DNA from: Blepharisma stoltei ATCC 30299
Taxonomy: Eukaryota; Protista; Ciliophora
Direction of reading: 5' to 3'
NCBI GenBank assembly: GCA_965603825.1
Contig: CBFDEM010000040.1
Location: forward strand, 558,001-622,000
Length of the DNA: 64,000 bases
The notes beneath the pieces were generated by a model, which saw nothing but the letters and a program-made list of their open reading frames with translations, was not told the DNA's origin and searched no databases. The translations under genes and the position numbers were made by a program. Shown here one piece after another: positions 24,262 through 41,647 of this stretch. Numbering within the stretch: position 1 is the stretch's first letter; each line of letters opens with the position of its first letter.

Positions 24262-27200
24262 ATGGAAAGTTTGGAAAAGCACCTTTATGATGTCTTTAAG
24301 AATTTTCAAGGCTATGAACGCTCAAGCTCTGCAGAATATTACCTATCTGCTTCTGGAATTGAAGGAGTGCTTACAACAATTTACCACGGCAGAATCCATA
24401 CAGTAGGAATAGATGCTCCTTTAAATTATTCTCCCGCCTCTTGCGATGAAATAAATGGTGTGTTAGCTTGTATAGCAAAATTCAAAGAAATTGTCAGGAT
24501 GGATTGTCAAGAACTAAAGAAGCCTGTTGTTTCTTTTTGGAAAATCAATATAAGTGGCAAAAATCCGTCTCAGAGAGTGCAACAAGCTCAAGAAAATTAT
24601 ATATGGCAATTAATGGTAATCTTTCCCAAAAACTATACAAATTTTGATGAAGAGCCTTTGTCTAATACCTCTGAGTTAGTTTACATGATTGATTCATCGG
24701 GTAATAATCATACTTTGCCAGGTTTGATGAAATTTTTGTTGAAAACACAAATTTCATATACAAGGTCTAATGGGATATCAAATACTTTTGGAGGAATATT
24801 CCCATCAGCTATAATATGCGATGCACTCAGCATTAAGCAGCACGAGAATCCCTCTCAAAGCTGACTATGGTTGATATTTAATACAGTAATGCTGATTTCA
24901 TCTAGAAATTGTAACTACTTAAATGAATTTTCAAATTTCGACGTATGCCGAACTAATAAAATATTAGCTATTTTCGAAGATTTAGGCATCAATTTCAGTA
25001 AGTGGGTAAAAATTGCTAATTTTTGAAGAACGTTTAGTTCAGAATGGTTAGAAATGATAGAAAAGGCAATTTTAACCGAGCTACGTGTAAAATTGTCATC
25101 ATGGTTAATTTTCGAAGATCAAGCAAATTTTTTAGCAAATAATTTGAACATAAACCAATTGTGTTTGCTAGTAGAGTACAAAGACAACAACAAAGAGGAT
25201 GATGCTCTCCAATTTATCTACTCATTAAGGAGAAGCCAAGAATTAGATTCTGATACCTTTAAAACTCCAAATTCCATAAGGATAAATCAAGATGAATCGC
25301 TTACAACGCCCCAGTCAGTAATTAAGGTAAAAACAAATTGTTCCTTCGAAACTTCAAGTGCAGATTTTATACATATAGTTAGAGGCGGAAATATCTTTAT
25401 TGACAAAACTATATTTATAAAGGCAATTTTAGAAAACTCTACCTATAAAATTGCTATTCTTAGGCCAAGAGGTTGGGGCAAATCAGTGAACATGAGCATG
25501 CTCCAAGCATTTCTAAATCCTCAGATAGGCGAGTCTGAAGAATTCTCAAACTTATACTTATTTACTGGCGAAAGAAATAACGCTAATTTGGATAACTTAG
25601 ACAATGAAAAGTGTAAAAACATTATGAAAATAGATGATGGAAAGTATAGAAATTTTGCAGGGACAATACCTACTATTTTATTTCGTTTTCCCGAAATTTT
25701 AACGTTAAACGCCGAAACTTCTGAAGAAATCAAGAATGAAATATCAAAAACATTACGAAAGCATATTTCTTCATATCGCCAATATTTAAAACCAAAAATA
25801 AGTCATTCTTCAATAAATAAAGATTTTAAGAAGCTAACACTTGAAGATTTGGACAAAATTATTGATCAGCAAAAAATAGATTTACCTAAGGAAATGAAGT
25901 TATTTAGACTATATCTATCAGATAGCTCAAAAATAGATATATATACAGCATTGAATGATCTTGTTACCATGCTGTATATGATTCATGGTAGACATGTTAT
26001 TTTTATTATAGATGACTACGATAGCATTTATAAGCAGGCAGCGGTAGATGCAAAGCATGAACAAGAAATAATATTGCTTTTAAGGCGAATGCTTTACCCA
26101 CTAGTTTATTCAGACGATGATTATATTAGGAAAATAATTGTAACTGGAGTTTATTATGATCTGCTACTTACTATATTTCCTGGTCAATTTTTTGCCCCTT
26201 TTACGGTTTTAAATGAGCTTTTCTCTGACTTTTTTGGCTTTACTGAATCCGAAGTTGATGAATTACTTGAACATCATTTGGTACAAGATTCGCACGCAAA
26301 TATAGTTGAGCAGAAAAAACTGATAAAGCAATGATATGATGGGTACAGGGTTGGGAGCCAAAAAATTTACAACCCCTTTTCAATAATGTGTTGCTTATGA
26401 AACGCTTCACTGCATAATGTAGCACCTCTCCAAACATATTGGCATAATGAAGAAGACGAAAAGATTTTCATTTCAGTATTCAATACTATTGAATCTCATA
26501 ACAAAATATTTGAAATAATGAAAGCTGGGTATCTTCGTTTAGATAGGCCAATATATCAGGACACAAGGATTAGAGATAATGTTTGTGTGCTATTTCTCTA
26601 TGCTGGATACTTGACACCCCATGAAAACAAGCCAAACAACTTAGTCTATGTAGTCCCTAATAAAGAAATAAAGAGATATTTTTATGAAAATTTGTTTACG
26701 GCATGAATCAATAAAGTGTCTAAAAATGATAATATTAATCATTTTGCATGGGTAAATAAATATATTGATTGTTTAGAGAACAAAGAACAGCTTCAAAATC
26801 TTATTCAAACTGATCTACTAGATAATATAAGCGACAATAGCAGTAAGAATGAGGCTTTTTTCCAAACTTATACAGGAGGAATAGCTCTTATAGCATTAGA
26901 GAAAGCACCGGCGCCTAAATATAAATTTCATGTAGAGAAAGCTAATCAATTCGGCAAAAAGACTGATGGAATTTTTATTCCAATTCCTGGAGAATCCTCT
27001 ACCATCATTATTCATGAACTTAAAAAATTAGAAGTTGCTCACAAAGATAAAGTTCAGGAAAGAGCTGATGATGCTCTTTGGCAGATCTACTCCAAGAAAT
27101 ATATGGATATTGCCTTAAGCTCGAAGGAGAGTCATTTTCGTAATGTAATTATTCGAGGCATTGTTTTTTACAGAAGCCCTTCTAAAGGAAATTGGGAAGT

Positions 27201-27501
27201 ATTTATCAAGGAGCATCAATTTAGCTATCATGATGCTGTAGAGGTAGACAAATACTTTAGAACAGCAGATGGAAAAATACTGCCTCAATATTCAGTATTG
27301 TGTAGAGATAATTGCAGGATATACTCCACAGAAATGGCAAGGGATAAGCTTGGTGGCAATGATATCGACGAATTAATCGAAAAAATTATTAGTAAAGACC
27401 CAAGTTTAGCTAATATAGATAAGACATATCAAGAAGAGACATTAAAAAGAAAAATTGACCCAGGAGCTGAAGGCATAAAAAAATTCAAAAAGGGAAAATA
27501 A
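24262..27501 (+). CDS. Bacterial-type AAA-ATPase-like + PD-(D/E)XK nuclease (DUF1703/PDDEXK_9-like) protein with an N-terminal extension, 1079 aa, intronless
   Basis: Four listed ORFs share one frame, joined by TGA at 24862, 25024, 26332, 26398 and 26704. Motifs FIDKT, RPRGWGKS, IIDDYD, FGFTESEV, (TGA)YDGY..YNPFSI, AGYLT, PNKEI, D..HELK and ALWQIYSKKY. Confidence 0.88.
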
Positions 27502-30715: not shown

Positions 30716-32351
30716 ATGAGAAAGAAACAAGATCTATTAAATGCATGAGGAGAAGATTTTTGAAAAAGGCATTTTGGAGTGTTTAACTTTTTAAGATGAT
30801 GCTTTTTCAAAAGTATTGATATGCTTGATGATAAATTCAAAAATCCAGAATTAACTATGGTTCTAGCTGGGATATTTTTGCTTAATATAAATTTAAATGT
30901 CCTAGGAAGTGTTACCTTAGGAGAGATCTGCTATCAATATCAAGAAGTAATAAGAAATTCAGGAACTTGTAAGCCAATTACCAGCAGCATTAAATCTGAG
31001 GAATCCATTTTCAGTGTATGTGAACTGATTTTATATTTTGTTCTTTGTTGGGAATCTTAAATCTTCTCCGTTTATATTGACCCTGTGTTGTGCATTGTTT
31101 CATACATATGATACAATTATCAAATTAATTGATACATCTTTTTGCCCACCTCAATCAAATACGGGAAGATTTAATGGGCTTTTACTTTGAGCTGCCTATA
31201 GATCTTTTATGAACTGCTGAGCTTTAATATATTGGCTTGCAATTGTAATTTTGCCTAAAAGACTTAGCAAGAAATTTCAATTAAGTGAGCTACTTAGCAT
31301 AAATCATATATTGTGCAAAATTTTATTCTGAAATAAAGCGAAAAAGACAAAGGAAATTTTAACAACACCTTTCAAAATGCCATTCAGAATTAGAGCATCA
31401 GCTGTGTTCTCTGTTTTCGCAATATTGGTAGACATCTGCGTTGTAAAATATATGCAGTATATGTTACTTTCTTATTCAATTTATTATTTAACTGATGAAT
31501 TAAGATCATATAGAGATTATTTGAAGACTCAGCCAGGAAACGATATATTTATCATCCTGTATTTACAAGAAACACACATTGTTACTGTTTCAGAAGGAAT
31601 CAACTTACTTAGTATTGTAATAAGATGCTTAGAGCCAATTTTCCCATGCATTGCTATATCTCTTATTATCGGATCAATTGTCGCATTATATTCTATAGTC
31701 TTAATGCTTTTTAGATACAAACAATATATGCTCATAATTGTCAATGAGCCAGAAAACAGAGAGTTTTTAAAGCGAATTTGAAGATTCCCAAGTTATTTAG
31801 CTATATTTTTCCCATGTATCTAATATTTAGCTCAATTTGTAATGAATATTTCTTTTCTTCACATAACTTTTTCATTTGTATTATCTAGTTTCCTTTATGC
31901 ATTTACTATATTTTTTATGTTTACAGATGTTTTTGCATATATTATGAGCAAGCCTTTACAGTTTTGGCTGGTTTTAGCCATTTTATTTTGAGGGTAAACT
32001 TAACTCAGATTAATTTATTTTCCTCATCTTGTTGAAAAAGATAGGACAGTAAAGAATAAAATGTATTTTTGCTTATGGGATAGCTGATTTTTATTTGCTG
32101 GATATACGAGCTCAATTATTATTGGCATCTTCAGATATTTTTTCGGAGCAGGGATTGCTTTATTTCTAGGGTTTAGAGCTCACATTAGTAATATGGCACC
32201 TCCATTTGATAGATTGGATGCGCTTTATCGGAGTTTTTACGGATCTATTACTATGCATTGCATTATTCTAGGAATTATGCCAACAAAAGAGGAGTTACTA
32301 GAAATAGCAAATGCCACAAGAGACAAAGGTCCTGCTAAAATAATCCTTTAA
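30716..32351 (+). CDS. STRA6-like multi-pass membrane protein, array copy 1 (524 aa); introns 30947-30962, 31443-31457, 31816-31830, 31994-32008
   Basis: Continuous frame after splicing with TGA=Trp. Motifs FKMPFRIRAS, LEPIFPC..LMLFRYK and VKNKMYF..GIFRY..PFDRLDALYRSFYG. Confidence 0.8.
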
Positions 32352-32633
32352 TTGAATAAATTTTACTTTCTGTTTTATTTTGAAATTAATATTATTGTCT
32401 GGCTATTCTTAATAATTCAATCTAAAATAATTACCAGTACACTCATATTTTAAGTATTTATGGATAGTTAAGAAATCTAAGTAACTATTAAATTTAGAGG
32501 CTATCTGAAAGCACTGTTCGAGCTATCTATAATAACTTAGTGTATTAAAACTTTATCGTCACTATTGTAGAAGAAAGTCTAAAAATTTAGAAATCCAATA
32601 GTCTCAAATTCTTTATAAAAATATTGTAAAGAA

Positions 32634-34269
32634 ATGAGAAATAAGCAAGATCTATTAAATTCGTGAGGAAAAGATTTTTGAAAAAGGCATTTTGGAGTGT
32701 TTAACTTTTTAAGATGATGCTTTTTTAAAAGCATTGACATGATCGATGATAAGTTCAGAAACCCTGAATTAACTATGATCTTGGCTGGAATATTTTTGCA
32801 TAATATAAATTTAAATGCCCTAGGAAGTGTTACCTTAGGAGAGATCTGTTATCAATATCAAGAAGTAATAAGAAATTCAGGAACTTGCAAATCAATTGCC
32901 AGCAGCTTTAAGTTTAAGGAATCCGTTTTCAATGTATGTGAACTGATTTTATATTTTGTTCTTTGTTGGAAATCTTAAATCTTCACCGTTTGCTCTGACT
33001 GTGATATGTGCATTGTTTCATACATATGATACAATTATCAGATTAATTGATACATCTTTTTGCCCACCTCGATCTAATACGGGAAGATTTAATGGACTTT
33101 TTCTTTGAGCTGTTTATAGATCTTTTATGAACTGCTGAGCTTTAGTATATTGGCTTGCAATTATAATGCTGCCTAAAAGACTTAGCAAGAAATTTCAATT
33201 AAGTAAGCTGCTTCGCATAAATCATATTTTGTGCAAAATTCTATTTTGAAATAAAGCCAAAAAGACAAAGAAAATTTTAGCAACACCTTTCAAAATACCT
33301 TTCAGAATTAGAGCATCAGCTGTTTTCTCTGTTTTAGCAACATTAGTTGATATCTGCGTTGTAAAATATATGCAGCATATGCTATTTTCTTATTCAATTA
33401 TATATTTAACAGAAGAGTTAAGAAAACATAGAAATTACTTGAAGACACAGCCAGGAATCGACATATTTATCATGTTTTATTTACAAGAAACACACATTGT
33501 TACTGTTTCAGAGGGAATTGACTTACTTAGTATTGTAATAAGATGCTTAGAACCGATTTTCCCATGCATTGCTATTTCTCTTATTATCGCATCAATTGCT
33601 GCATTATATTCTATAGGCTTAATGCTTTTTAGATACAAACAATATATGCTCATAATTGTCAATGAGCCCGAAAACAGAGAGTTTTTAAAGCGAGTTTGAA
33701 GATTCCCAAGTTATTTAGCTATATTTTTCCCATGTATCTAATATTTAGCTCAATTTGTAATGAATACTGCTTTTCTTCACATAACGTTTTCCTTTGTATT
33801 ATCTAGTTTCCTTTATGCATTTACTATATTTTTTATGTTTACAGATGTTTTTGCATATATTATGAGCAAGCCTTTACAGTTTTGGCTGGTTTTAGCCATT
33901 TTATTTTGAGGGTAAACTTAACTCAGATTAATTTATTTTCCTCATCTTGTTGAAAATGATAGGACAGTAAAGAATAAAATGTATTTTTGCTTATGGGATA
34001 GCTGATTTTTATTTGCTGGATATACGAGCTCAATTATTATTGGCGTCTTCAGATATTTTTTCGGAGCAGGGATTGCTTTATTTCTAGGGTTTAGAGCTCA
34101 CATTAGTAATATGGCACCTCCATTTGATAGATTGGATGCGCTTTATCGGAGTTTTTACGGATCTATTACTATGCATTGCATTATTCTAGGAATTATGCCA
34201 ACAAAAGAGGAGTTACTAGAAATAGCAAATGCCACAAGAGACAAAGGTCCTGCTAAAATAATCCTTTAA
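32634..34269 (+). CDS. STRA6-like protein, copy 2 (524 aa); introns 32865-32880, 33361-33375, 33734-33748, 33912-33926
   Basis: Collinear with copy 1 at a fixed offset of 1918 nt; 3' half nearly identical. Confidence 0.8.
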
Positions 34270-34635
34270 TTGAATAAATTTTACTTTCTGTTGCGAAAAG
34301 AATATAAGTTTTGATTTTGAAATTGATTTTATTTTCTTGTATTCTTAAAATTAAATCTGTAATATAAACTGATATTTTAAGTAGTTTATGGATAGTCAAG
34401 AATCCGAAGTCAACTGTTAAATTTAGAGGCCATCTGGAAGCACTTTTTGTTCTGAATTGTTATCGTTTTTTTGCAGAGGAAAATTTAGGAATCCAATCGT
34501 CTTTAGGGCAAATTATCTCTCCAATACAATATAAATATATAGAACTATATTAAAAGATAGAAAAGCCATATACCTTTACAAATAAGTCAAAATATATTAA
34601 AATATGAAATTCTTAATAAAAAATATTGTAAAGAA

Positions 34636-36277
34636 ATGAGAAATAAGCAAGATCTATTAAATTCGTGAGGAGAAGATTTTTGAAAAAGGCATTTTGGAGT
34701 GTTTAACTTTTTAAGATGATGCTTTTTTAAAAGCATTGATATGCTCGATGATAAGTTCAGAAACCCTGAATTAACCATGATTTTGGCTGGGATATTTTTA
34801 ATTAATATAAATTTAAATGTCCTAGGGAGTGTTAGCCTAGGAGAGCTTTGCTATGAATATCAAGAAGTAATAAGAAAATCAGGAACTTGTAAGTCAAATG
34901 CCAGCAGCTTTAAGTTTGAGAAATCCATTTTCAATGTACGTCAACTGGTTTTATATTTTATACTTTGTTGGAAATCTCAAATCTTCACCGTTTGCGCTGA
35001 CTGTGATATGTGCATCAGCTCATGCATATGATACGATTATTAAACTAATTGATACATCGTTTTGCCCAACTCGTTCGACTGAGTCTGATAGATGATATTC
35101 TCAAATTTTTATCTGAGCTGTCTATAGATCTTTTATGAACTGCTGAGCTTTATTTTATTGGCTTGCTATTGTGATGTTGCCTAAAAGACTTAGCAAAAAA
35201 TTTCAATTAAGTGAACTGATTAATTTGAATAATTCTGCATGCAAAATTCTATTTTGTAAAAGAGCAAAAAAAACAAAGGAAATTTTGACGACTCCTTTCA
35301 AAATACCATTCAGAATTCGAGCATCAGCGTTTTTTTCAATTTTTGCAACAATTGTGGATGCTTGTGGTGTAATTTATATGCAGTATACCTTATTTTCTTA
35401 TTCAATAATTTACTTAACTGATGATTTAAGATCTTACAGGGATTACTTGACAACTCAGCCCGGAAATGACATATTCATCGCGCTATTTTTAAAAGAAACA
35501 CACATTGTTACAGTTTCAGAAGGAATCGATTTTCTCGGCCTTGTAATAAAATGCTTAGAGCCTATTTTTCCATGCATTGTTGTCTCTATTGCTATTGGAT
35601 CAATTTTGACACTGTATTCCATAGGCCTAATGCTTTTTAGATATAAGCAATATATGCTAATAATTGTTAATGAGCCAGAAAACAGAGATTTTTTGAAGCG
35701 AGTTTGACGATTTCCAAGTTATTTAGCTATATTTTTCCCTTGTAACCACTATATAGCTCAATTTGTAACGAACACGCTTTTTCTCCACATGACTTTTTCA
35801 ATCGTGCTATGTAGCTTCATTTATGCATTCACACTATTTTTTATGATTATTGACATTTCTTCATACTTTATGAATAAACCTTTGGAATTTTGACTAGCTC
35901 TAGTGTTTTTATTTTGAGGGTAACATTAATATAGGCTGCTTTATTTTCCCCATCTAGTTGAAAAGGACGGAACAGTGAAAAATAAAAAATATTTTTGTCT
36001 TTGGGATAGTTGATTTTTATTCGCTGGATTTACCAGTTCGGCTCTTATAGGTTTTTTTAGGTACTTTTTCGGGGCAGGGATTGCTTTATTTCTGGGTTTT
36101 AGGGCTCACATTAGTAATATGGCACCTCCATTTGATCGATTGGATGCACTTTATCGAAGTTTTTACGGATCGATTACCCTGTATTGCATAATTCTAGGAA
36201 TTATGCCAACAAATGATGAGTTATTAGAGATAGCAAATGCCGCAAGAGATAAAGGCCCAGCGAAAATAATTTTTTAA
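34636..36277 (+). CDS. STRA6-like protein, copy 3 (526 aa); introns 34867-34882, 35369-35383, 35742-35756, 35920-35934
   Basis: Same exon structure and motifs as copies 1 and 2. Confidence 0.8.
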
Positions 36278-36360
36278 TTATAGTAGCAAAATTTTATTTT
36301 AATAAATATCAAATTTTTTAATTAATATTCAATTAAATGGATTTGTAGTAAAATTAATAA

Positions 36361-37992
36361 ATGAACGTCGAGCCGTTAAATTCCTGAGGAGACTCATTCT
36401 GAAAGCGCCACTTGAAATATCTCTGATGATTAAAATATGTTGTATTCTATAGTTTGGATCTAATAGAAGACAAATTTAAAATCCCAGAATTATCAATTAT
36501 TTTAGGTGCAACTTACATATTGGAGGTCAATATCAAAATTTTAGGATTATATAGTTTTGGCGACTATTGCTATGATTTTAAAGATGTAGTAGCTATTTAG
36601 AGTATTGACAGCACTATTCCGACCAAGTTTAATGCAAATAGTTCTTTTTCTATATTTTCGCATGGGTTTTATTTTTTATTGTTTGCTGGTAATATTAAAT
36701 CTTGCCCAATGTCCTTATCTATTATTTGTGCGTTATATAATATGTATGATGCTTCAGTTAAAGTTATTGACGCATCATTTTGTGATTTTTCTGGAGTAGA
36801 TGAAGTTCACTTTATTTTTACAATTATTCCTGCTTATTCAAGAGCAGTTTTAAGTGTATGGTCAGCTTTTTTATGGTTCATTTTAATTTTTTTTCCGAAG
36901 CGCTATCATAAAAACGCTCAACTTTACGAAATTATTGGAATGATAGTAAAGTGGCTACTTCTAAAACTCTTATGATGCAAAAAGAGAAAGAAGACTAGGA
37001 AAATAATAGAAAAAAAGTTCAAATATCCTTTCAGAATGGTTATATCTTCTTGATTATCCTATGGTTTTGCATTCGCGACAGCTGTTGAAGTAATAATTAT
37101 ATAGTTTTTGATATTTTCCTATCAGCTTGTTTATTTAGTTGGCTGATTAAAATCTGATGAAAGTGGGTTTTATTTTCAAAAAAATGATTATACTTTAGTT
37201 GCTTATAGAAATAATAAATTGCAGAGCACATCTGACGATATTAGCAAAGAAGAAAAAGATAAGATAATTTTGTTCCTGGAATTCTTATACCCTTGTATCA
37301 TAATATCATTTAGTATTGGCCATTCTTTTGTTATTTACTCTATTTTACTAATGCTTTATAAATATAAGCGATTTATGCTAATCATAATTGAAAACAACGA
37401 TCGTGATTTTTTGAGGCAAATATGGAAGTTTTCAAGTCATTCAGCTATGTTTTTTATTCGTAATTATAAATCAGCTCAATTTGTTGTAAATACTTTATTT
37501 TTACAATTTTTCTACTCATTTTTTGTTTTTTTTATGCTCTTCTTAGCTTTGCTCTTTGTTATGTTTATTGATCTTAGAGGATATCTAGCCAGCCAATCTG
37601 TATGATTTTGGATTGGATTTACTCCATTAATTCTAGGGTAGATACTAAGTAGAATATTTTATTTTCCAAGATTAGTGGAAAAGAACAAAAAAGTCAAAAA
37701 TAAATTATATTTGAGCTTTTGAGATGGGTGAAATTTCTTTATAGGGTTTTTAGGGGCTTTTGTTAAAGGTTTAACTCGTTATATCTTAGGATCTTTATTT
37801 GCTTTTTTTATGGGATTCAAAGCTCATAGAAGCGTAATCCCGTATCCTTTTGATAGCTATGATGCACTATATGTCAGCTTTTACGGATGCATAGTGCTTC
37901 ATTGCACTTCGCTTGGAATTTTACCAAGCGAAGAAGAAATGTATGAAATTGATCAAATTCAAGATAATCCTAGGCCATTTTTCAATAGATAA
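36361..37992 (+). CDS. STRA6-like protein, copy 4 (523 aa); introns 36586-36600, 37090-37104, 37460-37474, 37638-37652
   Basis: MNVEPLNS(W)GDSF(W)KRH start. In-frame TAGs fall inside 15-nt introns at positions homologous to the other copies. Confidence 0.8.
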
Positions 37993-38249
37993 TGTATCTT
38001 AAATTAAAATCAAATCAAAATTATTAATAATTTAAAATTTTTCGATTAATTTATTTTAAAATATTAATGTTACGTCAAATTATTTAAATTTCTAATTTTG
38101 GTAGGAGTTAAAAGAAATAATAAATGTCAGATAAAAAATTTAGCTAAAATTATTTTATAATTATGCGAACAAAATATCATTATTTAATATTATCGAAATA
38201 TCTGTAAATTGGATTTGTACCTGCAAATAGGTTTATAGATTTTATAATA

Positions 38250-39884
38250 ATGGAAGTTCAACCATTAAACTCCTGAGGAGACTCGTTCTGGAAGCGCCAC
38301 TTGAAATGCCTCTGGTGATTAAAATATATTGTATTTTATAGTTTTGATCTTATAGAGGATAAGCTTAAAATTCCAGAATTGTCAATTATTTTAGGTGTAA
38401 CTTACATATTAGATGTCAATACCCAAATTTTAGGATTATACAGTTTTGGCGACTATTGTTATGGCTACAATGATGTAATTGCTATTTAGAATGTTGACAG
38501 TACCATTCCGGCACTTTTTAATGCAAACAGTTCCTTTTCAATATTTTCGCACTATTTTTATTTTTTACTATTTGTTGGAAATATTAAATCTTGCCCAACC
38601 TCATTGACTATAATTTGTGCATTATATAATATATATGATGCAGTAGTTAAAGTTATGGACGCATCATTTTGTCCTGTTTCTGCCCAAGATGGCGTCAATT
38701 ATATTTTTACAATTATTCCTGCCTATTCCAGAGCAGCTTTAAGTGTGTGGTCATCTTTTCTATGGCTTGTTTTGTTGATTTTTCCAAAACGCTATTATAA
38801 AATAACCCAGCTTTATGGAATTATTGGGAATATAGTAAAATGGTCACTTATAAAACTCTTATGATGCAAAAAGAGGAAAAAAACTAGGAAAATATTAGAA
38901 AAAAAGTTTAAATATCCGTTGAGAATGACTACAGCAGCGTGAATATCATATACTTTTGCCCTCGCAACGACTTTAGAAGTAATATCTACATAGGTTTTGA
39001 TATATAGCTATCAGTTGATTTATCTAATTGACTGGATGAAGTCTGATGACAGTGGTTTTTATTTTCAAAACACTGAGCGTACTATAATTGCCTTTGGAAA
39101 TCATAATTTGCTAAGCTCTTCTGACGATGACGATAGCAAAGATGCAAAAGATAAAATAATTTTGTTTCTGGAATTCTTATACCCTTCTATCGTCATAGCA
39201 TTTTTTATCGGCCATGCATTCGTTATTTACTCAATTTTATTAATGCTCTACAAATATAAGCGATTTATGATGATTATCATTGAAGACAATGATCGTGCAT
39301 TTTTAAGGCAGATATGAAAATTCTCGAGTCATTCAGCTATGTTTTTTATTCGTAATTGTAAATCAGCTCAATTTGTTGTAAATACTTTATTTTTGCAAGT
39401 TATCTACTCCTTTTTTGTATTTTTTATATTCTTCTTAATTGTACTTTTTGCTGTGCTTATTGATCTCAGAAGCTATCTTGCTAGCCAGTCTCCATGATTT
39501 TGGATTGGATTCATCCCATTGATATTAGGGTAATTACCAAACAGCATATTTTATTTCCCAAGATTAGTAGAAAAGAATAATAAAATCAAAAATAAGCTAT
39601 ATTTGAGCTTTTGGGATGGTTGAAATTTCTTTATAGGGTTTGTAGGGGCTTTTGTTAAAGGTCTTACTCGTTATATCTTAGGATCTCTTTTTGCATTTTT
39701 TGTTGGTTTCAAAGCTCATAGAAGTGTGATGCCATATCCTTTTGACAGCTATGATGCACTCTACAACAGCTTTTACGGTTGCATAGTTCTTCATTGTGTT
39801 TCTCTCGGAATTTTACCTAGCGAAGAAGAGCTTCATGGTATTGATGAAAGTCTAGATAGTTCTAGGCCATTTTTTAATAGATAA
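38250..39884 (+). CDS. STRA6-like protein, copy 5 (524 aa); introns 38475-38489, 38979-38993, 39352-39366, 39530-39544
   Basis: Sister of copy 4; TGG/TGA swaps between the two copies. Confidence 0.8.
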
Positions 39885-39996
39885 TACTTAAACTAAATCA
39901 TAAATTATTCTATTATTTAAAAGATTGATTTATTTTGTCTAAAAGAAATTAGCATTTATTATAAATTATTCTGGATTTATTGCTCGTGTTGAGAAA

Positions 39997-41647
39997 ATGG
40001 AAAATGTAAAACAAAGAGATTTGCTAAATTCCTGAGGAGAAGGATTTTGGAAGCGACATCTAAAAGCTTTTGCCTTTATTAGGCTGCTGATGTTTTATGT
40101 CCTTGATATGCTTGAGGACAAGTTCATAATTCCAGAGCTTTCCATGACTATTGGAGCGCTCTATATTTTAGATCTAAACACCAAAATTCTTGGCACTTAT
40201 GAGCTTCAAGCAATTTGCTATCATTTAAATGAAGTAATCACTATAAAGGATAAAAAGAAAAACATTCCTTGGGTTTTTAATGTTGACAGCTCATTCTCTA
40301 AATACTCTCATTGGTTTTATTTCTTTATATTTGTCGGCAATATTCGCTCATCTCCATATATAATATCCTTGCTTTGTGCATTATACAGCACTTATGACAC
40401 CATTCTTAAATTAATTGATGCATCACTCTGCCCTGCATATAGCCACGAAACTGCAGCTTGGATTACAAATATAATTGTAGGCTATATAAGGGCCATTTTA
40501 AGTATTTGGGCATTTTTCTTGTGAATTGCTGTTTTATTTTTCCCCAAGAAATACAGAAAATCAATACAAATTTACGAAATCTTCGGGAAAATCGCAAAGT
40601 TAATTTTATTGAAAGTCTTATGCTGTAAACGAAGGCAAAAAACCAAGGCAGTATTGAGAATTCCATTTACTTATCCATTTAGAATTATCATATCTGCTTG
40701 AATTTCATATGCATTTGCTTTTGCTGTCATGATATTGGTATATATTATTTAGTATTCGATTGCATTTTACTCATTTTATTATTTAGCTGACTCTTTAGCA
40801 TCTTACAAAGATTATTTAGAAACCCAGGATGGAGATTCGCCTTTCATTATATTTTACTTACAGAGCACTAGTGTGTTCACTGTAAGTGAAGGTATAGCTT
40901 TATTAACAAAAGCAATAACACTTGTGAGGTCTCTTTTTCCCTGTGCTCTTGCAGGAATAATTATTGGTCATTTATTTGTGATTTATTCGATTGGTGTGAT
41001 GCTCTACAGATATAAGCAATATATGCTGATAATCATACATGAAAGTGATAACCGAGAGCTTTTAAAGCGAATTTGACGATTTTCTAGTCACTTAGCAATT
41101 TTCTTTCCAGGTAAAAAGCTATATAGCGCAGTTTGTTATTAATTGTGTATTCCTTCAATTCACATTTTCGTTTTTGGTGTTTAGCATCCTCTTTGGGATT
41201 GCTCTTTACATAAACCTATCAGGCCCAGGCTCATACTTTGCTGGACGAACCATATGATTTTGGCTTAGCTTTTCGCCATTAATATTAGGGTAACTCCTAA
41301 ATAGGACTTTTTATTTCCCTAAGCTAGTTGAAAAAGACAGAAAAGTCAAAAATAAACTTTATTTTTGCTTTTGGGACGGATGATATTTTCTTATAGGCTT
41401 TATAGGCGCTTTTATCAAAGGCATAACAAGGTATATTTTAGGCACAAGTGTTGCTTTATTCTTTGGATTCAGAGCTCATGTAAGCATAATGCCTTCACCA
41501 TTTGATAGATTAGATTCTCTTTATAGGAGCTTTTATGGGTGCATGACACTGCATTGTATTTCTCTTGGAATCATGCTGACACAAAGGGAAATTGAAGAAA
41601 TGTCGATTATTCATAAAGACAAAGGTCCTCCAAAAGTTGTATTTTAA
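39997..41647 (+). CDS. STRA6-like protein, copy 6 (529 aa); introns 40234-40248, 40738-40752, 41111-41126 (16 nt), 41290-41304
   Basis: Same architecture; the frame closes only with the 16-nt intron 3. Confidence 0.8.

Follow-up and report, generated by a model that had tools for sequence, protein, structure and literature searches.

How did an intronless gene with bacterial-type domains come to lie among ordinary ciliate genes in Blepharisma stoltei ATCC 30299, and is it still doing anything there? The gene was found in a window of 64,000 nucleotides (the whole stretch of DNA analysed, contig CBFDEM010000040.1, positions 558,001 to 622,000), and the original prediction, made from the letters alone, had seen in it a horizontally acquired, host-adapted nuclear NTP-dependent nuclease. 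The best overall explanation, which we hold with moderate confidence, is that it is an intact member of a heterotrich gene family of symbiont origin, whose history and role in genetic conflict would be those reconstructed below.

The gene and its reading frame

As predicted, the frame at 24262-27501 is open throughout its 1079 codons, has no intron and ends in a TAA stop at 27499. When TGA is read as Trp, its translation is identical to the public B. stoltei gene model P0257. All five in-frame TGA codons were located (24862, 25024, 26332, 26398 and 26704), and two of them fall on family-conserved Trp columns (residues 691 and 815). Position 691 does not vary in 36 aligned sequences, of which 24 are short proteins of bacterial type that lack the N-terminal domain.

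P0257 consists of three modules

The original prediction had described a two-domain architecture. We found three modules, the first of which, a CE-clan domain predicted to be catalytically dead and covering the first ~250 residues, had been overlooked. The features of the gene are as follows.

24262..27501, plus strand: whole gene, 1079 codons and TAA stop, no intron, product P0257 (ORF and public-model match)
24286..25014, plus strand: CE-clan (Ulp1-like) protease fold, predicted catalytically dead, residues 9-251 (AlphaFold model, Foldseek, VIA-align)
24601-24603, plus strand: His position, here I114 (catalytic columns, alignments A1/A2)
24691-24693, plus strand: catalytic Asp retained, D144 (catalytic columns, alignments A1/A2)
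24859-24861, plus strand: Cys position, here S200, followed by TGA-encoded W201 (catalytic columns, alignments A1/A2)
25027..25353, plus strand: helical linker, residues ~256-364, four predicted helices and then a disordered stretch (alignment and AlphaFold model)
25354..26331, plus strand: DUF1703-type P-loop ATPase (Pfam AAA-ATPase_like), residues ~365-690, with a ~75-residue insertion relative to the Pfam profile (Pfam and alignment)
25462..25485, plus strand: Walker A RPRGWGKS, residues 401-408 (sequence; consensus from PMC1913061)
25999..26022, plus strand: Walker B region FIIDDYDS, containing IIDDYD, residues 580-587 (sequence and alignment)
26332..26385, plus strand: WYDGY...YNPFSI block, sensor-2-like region of the family, residues 691-708 (alignment)
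26386..26811, plus strand: helical middle region between ATPase and nuclease, residues ~709-850 (AlphaFold model, VIA-align)
26812..27261, plus strand: PD-(D/E)XK nuclease domain, residues ~851-1000 (alignment A3, AlphaFold, Foldseek, VIA-align)
26851-26853, plus strand: nuclease motif I, E864 (alignment A3)
26965-26967, plus strand: nuclease motif II, D902 in KTDG (alignment A3)
27016-27024, plus strand: nuclease motif III, E919-L-K921 in IHELKK (alignment A3)
27082-27084, plus strand: nuclease motif IV, Q941 in ALWQIY (alignment A3)
27445..27498, plus strand: basic C-terminal tail with bipartite NLS pattern, residues 1062-1079 (pattern match)

The N-terminal domain gave an AlphaFold model with a pLDDT of 81 and a pTM of 0.81, and CE-clan proteases filled the top Foldseek matches to that model. 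Using VIA-align, all 50 of the 50 top rows were CE-clan proteins, headed by OtDUB (Z 12.6, 167 aligned residues, rmsd 3.4) and including SseL (11.5), RickCE (11.2), the CidB deubiquitinase (11.0) and Ulp1 (8.9). Residues 9-251 thus share their fold with the effector deubiquitinases OtDUB, RickCE, SseL and ChlaDUB and with Ulp1/SENP, over a range of Z from 12.6 to 8.7, and the bacterial effector-type proteases outscore eukaryotic Ulp1 as structural matches. Members of the ciliate and bacterial family with an intact active site also keep the order His...Asp...Gln...Cys of the clan, and the HW...D...DCGWW pattern is kept in the bacterial homologues and in some Stentor-like ones. In P0257, by contrast, Ile stands in place of the His and Ser in place of the Cys, leaving D144 as the one retained member of the His-Asp-Cys triad in the A1/A2 columns; judged on these residues, protease catalysis is predicted to be dead. 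Pfam Peptidase_C48 did not match P0257, a shape search of the ESM Atlas with the N-terminal model returned unrelated families at TM <=0.33, and a profile search of PDB sequences with alignments A2 and A3 yielded nothing significant, with CidB at E 0.03 as a lead.

The ATPase is clearly recognised by PF09820 (AAA-ATPase_like; 77-80 bits against a cut-off of 26.1), and the Walker A, Walker B and WYDGY/YNPFSI motifs quoted in the original prediction are all present, Walker A exactly at 25462-25485. The DUF1703 family, defined by Knizewski et al. 2007 from PF09820 and PF08011 together, has the consensus motifs RPRRxGKS for Walker A and DEYD for Walker B (PMC1913061). P0257 matches the former at R401, P402, R403 and G406-K407-S408, with the fourth-position Arg changed to Gly; in the latter the Asp is retained and Glu is changed to Asp, giving DDYD. 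Both departures are common to P0257 and its closest paralogues, and because of them ATP hydrolysis by P0257 may be weak. The Trp that opens the WYDGY block, W691, is TGA-encoded and invariant across the bacterial and ciliate members aligned. Further downstream, residues ~655-870 bear a weak likeness (VIA-align Z ~6) to the helical and winged-helix domains of the STAND proteins CED-4 and the resistosome; a repeat sensor domain as in STAND NTPases was not seen in P0257.

The nuclease core, described in the original prediction as intact-looking, held up well. E864, D902, E919/K921 and Q941 align with the bacterial PDDEXK_9 columns in A3, such that motifs I-IV are all kept, and the restriction-endonuclease-like fold is supported by structure matches: the AlphaFold model (pLDDT 85.5) retrieved CidB ND1-ND2, CinB, R.SwaI and EcoRV as top Foldseek matches, with VIA-align Z values of 11.0 for CidB (ND2), 10.5 for CinB and 7.6 for EcoRV. 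Of the two Pfam families named for a HMMER check, AAA-ATPase_like was confirmed and PDDEXK_9 was not. PF08011 reached 16.3 bits against a cut-off of 25.5 (E 0.0099) with the C-terminal piece and was not listed in the Pfam scan of whole P0257, so the nuclease assignment rests on the bacterial alignment (A3) and the fold. The nuclease is followed by a beta-hairpin/helix extension that is absent from typical short bacterial DUF1703 proteins, and then by the basic tail, in which residues 1062-1079 fit the bipartite NLS pattern as predicted. Most ciliate members of the family carry a basic tail.

P0257 belongs to a large and partly decayed family

The gene had been taken for a lone embedded acquisition, and counting its paralogues overturned that picture. 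PF09820 has ~30 matches in the B. stoltei genome, and our census found ~23 loci on 9 contigs, with 11 intact full-length ORFs and ~12 broken copies; divergence among the paralogues is deep (35-72% identity). Between P0257 and its closest paralogue, P0094, dN/dS is 0.53 at a dS of 0.29, which by a rough hand calculation is ~6 standard errors under 1. Per-domain values range from 0.39 to 0.82 and, again on a rough calculation, are well under 1 outside the linker. Constraint on the gene is loose at this dN/dS and roughly half of the copies are in decay, a pattern suggestive of expansion followed by decay, that is, of birth-and-death turnover.

It is unlikely that P0257 is itself an intact-looking but functionless copy drifting toward a pseudogene, or a non-catalytic scaffold. 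Such drift would fit the broken half of the family, the dN/dS of 0.53, the off-consensus Walker A and B motifs, the predicted loss of protease activity and the sub-threshold PDDEXK_9 match. Nevertheless, 1079 codons have stayed open despite the AT-rich DNA, dN/dS is, on the rough calculation, well under 1 in every domain but the linker, and P0257 retains all four nuclease motifs together with the Lys and Ser of the P-loop and the Asp of Walker B. For the P0257 gene alone the result is a modest one, namely one intact copy among ~11.

Homologues in other heterotrichs and in bacteria

Outside Blepharisma, three-module homologues were found on eukaryotic metagenomic contigs that use the standard code. 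On one of these contigs LMBR1 is 73% identical to that of Stentor coeruleus, 58-60% to that of Blepharisma and ~40% to that of Paramecium; the label Stentor-like is anchored taxonomically by this one contig. The name Stentor coeruleus was absent among the 30 representative matches looked up (90%-identity clusters). Some Stentor-like copies have lost the nuclease Asp, and protease catalysis has probably been lost in the Blepharisma lineage. As far as seen, the family is fast-evolving and, among eukaryotes, confined to heterotrich ciliates, and our literature search found no publication on it.

In bacteria, the same modules occur in four ORFs (1986-2904 aa) of 'Candidatus Cyrtobacter zanobii' Eae1, a member of the Midichloriaceae (Rickettsiales) living in symbiosis with the ciliate Euplotes. 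One ORF of 2000 aa (L069:9833-15835) is collinear with P0257 residues 10-1001 at 25% identity over ~1100 columns (E 4e-51), the likeness running from the CE domain and linker through the ATPase with its insertion, the middle region and the nuclease to the post-nuclease extension. This ORF is surrounded by genes for a TrwB/TraD coupling protein, a TrwC relaxase, a primase, a resolvase and transposases, and it sits on a conjugative element. Unlike P0257, the Cyrtobacter proteins keep the protease His, Asp, Gln and Cys, encode Trp by TGG only and lack the basic tail, in whose place the collinear homologue has 900 further residues; across the Cyrtobacter proteins these C-terminal extras amount to 900-1900 residues, with no Pfam match there.

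The CE domain on its own has relatives in Holosporaceae, Legionellales, a gammaproteobacterial MAG, Corallococcus and Cyrtobacter; the MAG copy is fused to ankyrin and LRR repeats, and one relative lies on a myxobacterial contig of 68% GC. The catalytic Cys motif is kept in all bacterial copies and lost in many ciliate ones. Relatives of the ATPase-nuclease core are far more numerous, with 2743 representatives at E<=0.001, and the bacterial ones number in the thousands. An NCBIfam scan gave nothing meaningful, an Atlas feature search returned generic DUF1703 clusters only, and PADLOC-DB 2.0 held no model that was matched by P0257, a paralogue, the Stentor-like homologues or the bacterial relatives.

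The statement that this core is typical of bacteria was borne out: it is of the DUF1703 type, which is mainly bacterial. P0257 and DUF1703 proteins share the order P-loop ATPase, helical region, PD-(D/E)XK nuclease, as well as an RPRxxGKS Walker A, a D(E/D)YD Walker B, a WYxGY...YNPWS block and nuclease motifs I-IV. They also share a tendency to multi-copy expansion in host-associated genomes, DUF1703 having reached 25 paralogues in the Cardinium symbiont cCpun (PMC6387759). In contrast to DUF1703 proteins, P0257 is about twice as long, adding the CE-clan domain, the linker, the ATPase insertion, the post-nuclease extension and the basic tail; its gene resides in a eukaryotic nucleus, and its PDDEXK_9 match lies under the Pfam cut-off.

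A second likeness is to CidB and CinB of Wolbachia, which were the best structural matches to the P0257 nuclease (CidB ND2 Z 11.0, CinB 10.5), while the CidB deubiquitinase domain was among the top matches to the N-terminal domain (Z 11.0). Here too a PD-(D/E)XK module is combined with a CE-clan module. The differences are nonetheless considerable, with P0257 having the reverse domain order, one nuclease domain rather than two, a DUF1703 ATPase in between, no CidA/CinA-like partner gene adjoining its own gene and sequence similarity that is non-significant (E 0.03). CidB has an active protease alongside nuclease-like domains that are inactive; P0257, to judge from its residues, would be the reverse.

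Origin of the family and direction of transfer

Trees were built in FastTree and IQ-TREE runs of 52 and 46 rows and are unrooted. The Blepharisma copies are monophyletic (support 100) and fall in a heterotrich clade of 18 rows (support 98), whose sister is a bacterial clade of 12 rows that includes Cyrtobacter (support 100). Together with the long-branch, eukaryote-context row P0232, both clades form a group of 31 rows (support 100) inside other DUF1703 proteins. An AU test on the core region rejected an exclusive clade of heterotrichs and Cyrtobacter, a group named after inspection of the tree (p 0.0001). In view of this rejection, the shared CE fusion may go back to the ancestor of a wider bacterial clade, some members of which then lost it, or it may have been put together anew by domain shuffling. 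The tree of the CE domain did not separate bacteria from ciliates.

Taken together, these data strongly indicate that the heterotrich clade is nested in the bacterial diversity of DUF1703 and that the whole three-module architecture is common to the heterotrich genes and the giant Cyrtobacter proteins. Since the same three-part layout is found on the Cyrtobacter conjugative element, bacterial symbionts of this type, long ago, are the most likely source of the family.

The opposite direction, in which intracellular bacteria, Cyrtobacter among them, took up a three-domain gene of heterotrich origin, appears improbable to us. Intracellular bacteria often acquire host-like genes, and the CE-domain tree mixes bacteria and ciliates. 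Because the trees are unrooted, the direction of transfer rests on nesting in bacterial diversity and on the mobile-element context, and both argue against capture from a ciliate: the ciliate clade is nested among bacterial members of the 2743 representative core relatives, and some members of the bacterial sister clade lack the CE domain and reside in integrase/resolvase islands. In addition, CE-domain relatives occur in several unrelated bacterial lineages, including the myxobacterial contig of 68% GC, and the Cys motif retained in every bacterial copy has disappeared from many ciliate ones.

Proposed history and role

Under a symbiont origin, the ancestor of Blepharisma and the Stentor-like heterotrichs would have gained a symbiont effector or toxin gene, which was presumably recoded to the host's UGA = Trp and acquired a nuclear-targeting tail. 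The family would then have multiplied by birth and death, with protease catalysis probably being lost in the Blepharisma lineage. The protein is predicted to enter a nucleus, where nucleotide binding at the ATPase could switch or oligomerise it and thereby license DNA cleavage by the nuclease. The protease domain, though dead, may bind or sense partners such as ubiquitin-like proteins. Such a family would plausibly act in genetic conflict, either defending the cell from foreign DNA or intracellular bacteria or playing a toxin-like selfish role.

The original prediction had also listed developmental DNA processing among the possible functions. A role in the programmed genome rearrangement that accompanies formation of a new macronucleus might be expected of a predicted nuclear nuclease in a DNA-eliminating organism, but we regard it as very improbable, given that a core developmental enzyme would seldom show lineage-specific birth-and-death expansion and that a published analysis assigns excision in B. 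stoltei to PiggyBac homologues (PMC9942806).

If the proposed origin is correct, this is one of the few known cases in which the nuclear genome of a protist has fixed and expanded an entire multi-domain, effector-type gene from an intracellular bacterium. A donor-type gene (on the Midichloriaceae conjugative element) and the recipient clades, Blepharisma and Stentor-like heterotrichs, are available for direct comparison, together with the changes that followed transfer, including UGA recoding, the basic tail, losses of the protease or of the nuclease Asp and birth-and-death turnover. The fate of symbiont toxins inside host genomes thereby becomes directly testable, and DUF1703, an uncharacterised family, gains a genetically tractable eukaryotic system.

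A more specific version of this history, which we put forward tentatively, is that a captured conjugative-element toxin gave rise to nuclear NLR-like, ATP-gated nucleases that target foreign DNA or intracellular bacteria, or that mediate mating or strain incompatibility, with the dead protease as sensor. On that reading the captured gene would be the module set of a cytoplasmic-incompatibility factor plus a switch ATPase, carried as cargo of a Rickettsiales-type endosymbiont.

Age of the acquisition and genomic setting

The proposal of horizontal transfer therefore survives as regards a bacterial, symbiont-type source, given the collinear Cyrtobacter homologue, whereas a recent or single event does not. 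A recent, single, Blepharisma-specific acquisition is highly improbable: the best matches outside Blepharisma are just 23-36% identical, as such an event would predict, but there are ~23 deeply diverged paralogous loci (35-72% identity), and Stentor-like homologues with the same three domains join the Blepharisma copies in one clade. Since they form this clade, the family has been inherited vertically within ciliates from before the split between Blepharisma and the Stentor-like lineage. A vertically inherited ciliate clade had been named in advance as the result that would count against transfer; its presence removes recent transfer and leaves ancient transfer standing, such that old horizontal transfer from a symbiont-type effector is supported.

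The position of the gene amid ordinary ciliate genes was likewise corroborated. The neighbouring genes are eukaryotic (ABCG-type transporter, nucleoplasmin-like, RIB43A, Kelch and VPS9), the nearest being RIB43A, a small unannotated ORF and the Kelch protein, and a scan of GC content over the gene revealed no shift relative to the flanks. The gene uses the host code, and its codon use and share of TGA match those of the host. As a discriminator of origin, codon usage failed, because an AT-rich Cyrtobacter gene has similar RSCU.

Finally, we can practically discount contamination or chimerism, in which a gene of a code-4 bacterium or symbiont was joined in during assembly: the domain types are bacterial and some bacteria also read TGA as Trp, but the gene is interior to an 841-kb contig, whose assembly is described as comprising 64 contigs complete from telomere to telomere, it is flanked by RIB43A, nucleoplasmin-like and Kelch genes with flat GC, TGA is a sense codon across the whole window, the paralogues are spread over 9 contigs, and the bacterial counterpart in Cyrtobacter encodes Trp exclusively by TGG.

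A host-encoded gene with sense TGA codons

The contig stretch analyzed here (G000:C40:558001-622000) belongs to an assembly of 41.46 Mb in 64 contigs, consistent with the published macronuclear genome of B. stoltei, which comprises 41 Mbp in 64 telomere-to-telomere contigs, reads UGA as tryptophan and has introns of 15 or 16 nt (PMC9942806). The gene has the following features.

24262-27501, + strand: open frame of 1079 codons with a TAA stop
24862, 25024, 26332, 26398 and 26704, + strand: the five in-frame TGA codons of frame 24262-27501
Residues 367-630: AAA-ATPase_like domain (PF09820), Pfam score 77-80 bits (cut-off 26.1)

Our first searches used the TGA-free pieces of the gene one by one. 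Using the closest paralog as query, we recovered P0257, the public gene model, which is letter-for-letter identical to the ORF translated with TGA as Trp. The public model is therefore an intronless 1079-aa protein with five TGA-encoded tryptophans, as the original prediction had described it. Its placement among ciliate genes also held, since it is flanked by genes of eukaryotic type (an ABCG-type transporter, a nucleoplasmin-like gene, the ciliary gene RIB43A, Kelch and VPS9) and GC content stays level through it. TGA is used as a sense codon throughout the window, making up 31% of Trp codons in the gene versus 19% in its neighbours, and encodes two family-conserved tryptophans in the gene; W691 of the WYDGY motif (a TGA codon) is invariant among 36 aligned ciliate and bacterial sequences. 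Together, the host-type flanks, the steady GC and the sense TGA codons at conserved tryptophans rule out contamination.

Domain architecture of P0257

The motifs listed in the original prediction were all located, with Walker A at exactly 25462-25485. In the ATPase, the P-loop Lys/Ser and the Walker B Asp are kept, but the fourth Walker A position is Gly where the family has Arg, and Walker B reads DDYD rather than the family's DEYD, suggesting that ATP hydrolysis by P0257 may be weak.

Because the nuclease profile PDDEXK_9 scored 16.3 bits, below the Pfam cut-off of 25.5, we tested this domain by alignment and fold. When the gene was aligned with 24 short bacterial-type DUF1703 proteins and 11 of ciliate type, E864, D902, E919-x-K921 and Q941 matched the four defining nuclease motifs of DUF1703 (PMC1913061). 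The AlphaFold model of residues 650-1079 (pLDDT 85.5, pTM 0.83) resembles PD-(D/E)XK folds, with CidB ND1-ND2, R.SwaI, CinB and EcoRV as best Foldseek matches and VIA-align Z scores of 11.0 for CidB (163 residues, rmsd 3.5), 10.5 for CinB and 7.6 for EcoRV. The nuclease core is intact-looking, as first proposed. The C-terminal 18 residues match the pattern of a bipartite NLS, also in line with that proposal, and basic tails recur among ciliate family members.

The description of a two-domain protein, however, had omitted the first 250 residues. In an AlphaFold model (pLDDT 81, pTM 0.81) these take up the fold of a CE-clan cysteine protease, and the model's top Foldseek matches are all CE-clan proteases. 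In VIA-align, OtDUB (Z 12.6), ASFV pS273R (11.6), SseL (11.5), RickCE (11.2) and the CidB DUB (11.0) all scored higher than yeast Ulp1 (8.9). In the family alignments, the CE motifs of intact-site members run HW...D...QQ...DCGWW. The gene has I114 at the His position and S200 at the Cys position, leaving D144 as the only one of the three residues kept. Loss of His and Cys is common to all Blepharisma paralogs examined, which indicates that the protease had lost catalysis before expansion of the family in the Blepharisma lineage.

Intact and broken copies in Blepharisma

PF09820 matched about 30 places in the B. stoltei genome, and the ATPase piece of the gene 34. For a census, we retrieved these family regions and predicted ORFs in them, reading TGA as Trp. 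The gene proved to be one of a family spread over 9 contigs, with 11 copies intact and full-length and ~12 further loci broken or fragmentary. In the Blepharisma copies examined, the protease is lost throughout and the nuclease kept. The intact copies are as follows.

C40, 24262-27501 of the window: the gene
C40, ~90 kb downstream: P0094
C32: P0258
C22: three copies
C58: two copies
C27, C54 and C62: one copy each

P0094 is 72% identical to P0257. Comparison of the two genes gave dS 0.29, dN 0.15 and dN/dS 0.53 (0.39-0.82 per domain), indicating purifying selection, but a loose one, consistent with birth-and-death evolution. In the C40 cluster at 656-677 kb, three of four copies are broken. This cluster (G000:C40:656000-677500, 38-55 kb past the window end) is a minus-strand tandem of four family copies plus one fragment, in which only P0094 (674143-677472) is intact and each of the remaining three is broken into 3-6 frames.

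Homologues in Stentor-like heterotrichs

A profile-free exhaustive database search yielded 2743 representatives (E<=0.001), of which just 8 reached E<=1e-30; these are Blepharisma paralogs, and the five looked up were all from B. stoltei. Below these come, among others, proteins of 900-1070 aa that share the complete architecture, encoded on eukaryotic contigs (GC 30-38%, standard code) that carry Pkinase, START, FYVE, LMBR1, BET, CBM_20, ALG11, PP2C, ParcG and cyclic-nucleotide-gated channel genes. The LMBR1 protein adjoining one homologue shares 73% identity with that of Stentor coeruleus, against 58-60% with Blepharisma and ~40% with Paramecium and Ichthyophthirius, which assigns at least one contig to a Stentor-like heterotrich.

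Among these metagenomic homologues, P0140 and P0100 retain an intact protease triad, and P0100 keeps the nuclease site too. The nuclease Asp is lost in P0111 (N), P0110 (Y) and P0140 (G), the last while keeping protease His/Asp/Cys, and P0106 is without the CE domain. The decay pattern varies from copy to copy (alignments A1-A3).

Bacterial counterparts and origin

When one genome per bacterial species was searched with the intact-site CE alignment, relatives emerged in Holosporaceae 'Namur', 'Candidatus Cyrtobacter zanobii' Eae1, Corallococcus praedator (68% GC) and two MAGs, one of Legionellales and one gammaproteobacterial; in the latter the domain is fused to ankyrin and LRR repeats. All of these relatives have the DCGWW Cys motif. 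Cyrtobacter belongs to the Midichloriaceae (Rickettsiales) and is a symbiont whose host is the ciliate Euplotes aediculatus. In its genome of 1.3 Mb, four ORFs of 1986-2904 aa bear the modules. One of 2000 aa (contig C167) is collinear with P0257 residues 10-1001 (25% identity, E 4e-51), and the alignment spans the linker, ATPase insertion and post-nuclease extension, which ordinary DUF1703 proteins lack. Its neighbours, a TrwB/TraD coupling protein, TrwC relaxase, primase, resolvase and two transposases, mark a conjugative element. Other bacterial relatives likewise have mobile or defence surroundings, lying beside Wadjet, in an integrase/phage island and in a resolvase/integrase island.

All four Cyrtobacter ORFs (L069:9833-15835, L070:2486-11200, L071:1583-8962, L072:960-6920) carry ATPase and nuclease modules; the CE domain is in-frame in two, and for a third a CE fragment lies upstream in an ORF of its own. 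A Toprim/DnaG-type primase gene adjoins at least two of the four, and the 900-1900 additional C-terminal residues have no Pfam match. The 'Namur' contigs L053 and L054 (4.0 and 2.8 kb, high coverage, 31% GC) each end in an ORF that is the best bacterial CE-domain match (E about 1e-61 to the family profile); since neighbouring ORFs have no Pfam match, these contigs could be bacterial or host-derived. We also noted P0148, an 814-aa DUF1703 protein labelled Sarracenia purpurea, whose source probably lives in the pitcher, and P0103, a 5114-aa protein from a 2.28-Mb contig with several DUF1703 stretches.

Unrooted trees were built on the ATPase-to-nuclease core (FastTree, 115 rows; IQ-TREE mixture model, 52 and 46 rows). 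Blepharisma was monophyletic (support 100) within a heterotrich clade of 18 rows (98), whose sister was a bacterial clade of 12 rows (100) including all four Cyrtobacter copies. With the long-branch row P0232, from a eukaryotic-context contig, these form a group of 31 rows (100) nested among the remaining bacterial DUF1703 proteins. An exclusive heterotrich-Cyrtobacter clade was rejected (AU test, p 0.0001) and the CE-domain tree did not resolve, so that the exact donor may belong to another lineage and the CE fusion may be older or younger than that bacterial clade. Bacterium-to-ciliate transfer is the simpler reading in view of this nesting, the wide distribution of both domains in bacteria and the mobile-element setting. 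Horizontal acquisition, as originally predicted, is thus supported by the nesting and the collinear Cyrtobacter homologue, but not as a recent event: its predating the split of Blepharisma and Stentor-like heterotrichs is supported by the family's distribution.

We propose that the transferred gene was a symbiont-type effector or toxin with three domains, and that host adaptation and copy turnover followed. From domain logic, motif conservation and family dynamics, we infer that P0257 may act as a nuclease in the nucleus, gated by the binding of nucleotide, in which the dead protease domain serves as a binding module, and that the family may work in genetic conflict. DUF1703, a family defined by computation in 2007 (PMC1913061), is still uncharacterised; our literature search found no paper on the ciliate family.

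Elsewhere in the window, C-rich tandem repeats of 30-36-nt period occupy 95-274, in an open frame at the window start, and GC skew in the first kilobase is -0.43. Finally, 30716-41647 holds similar ORFs arrayed in tandem, among them two of 290 codons each (30954-31823 and 32872-33741).
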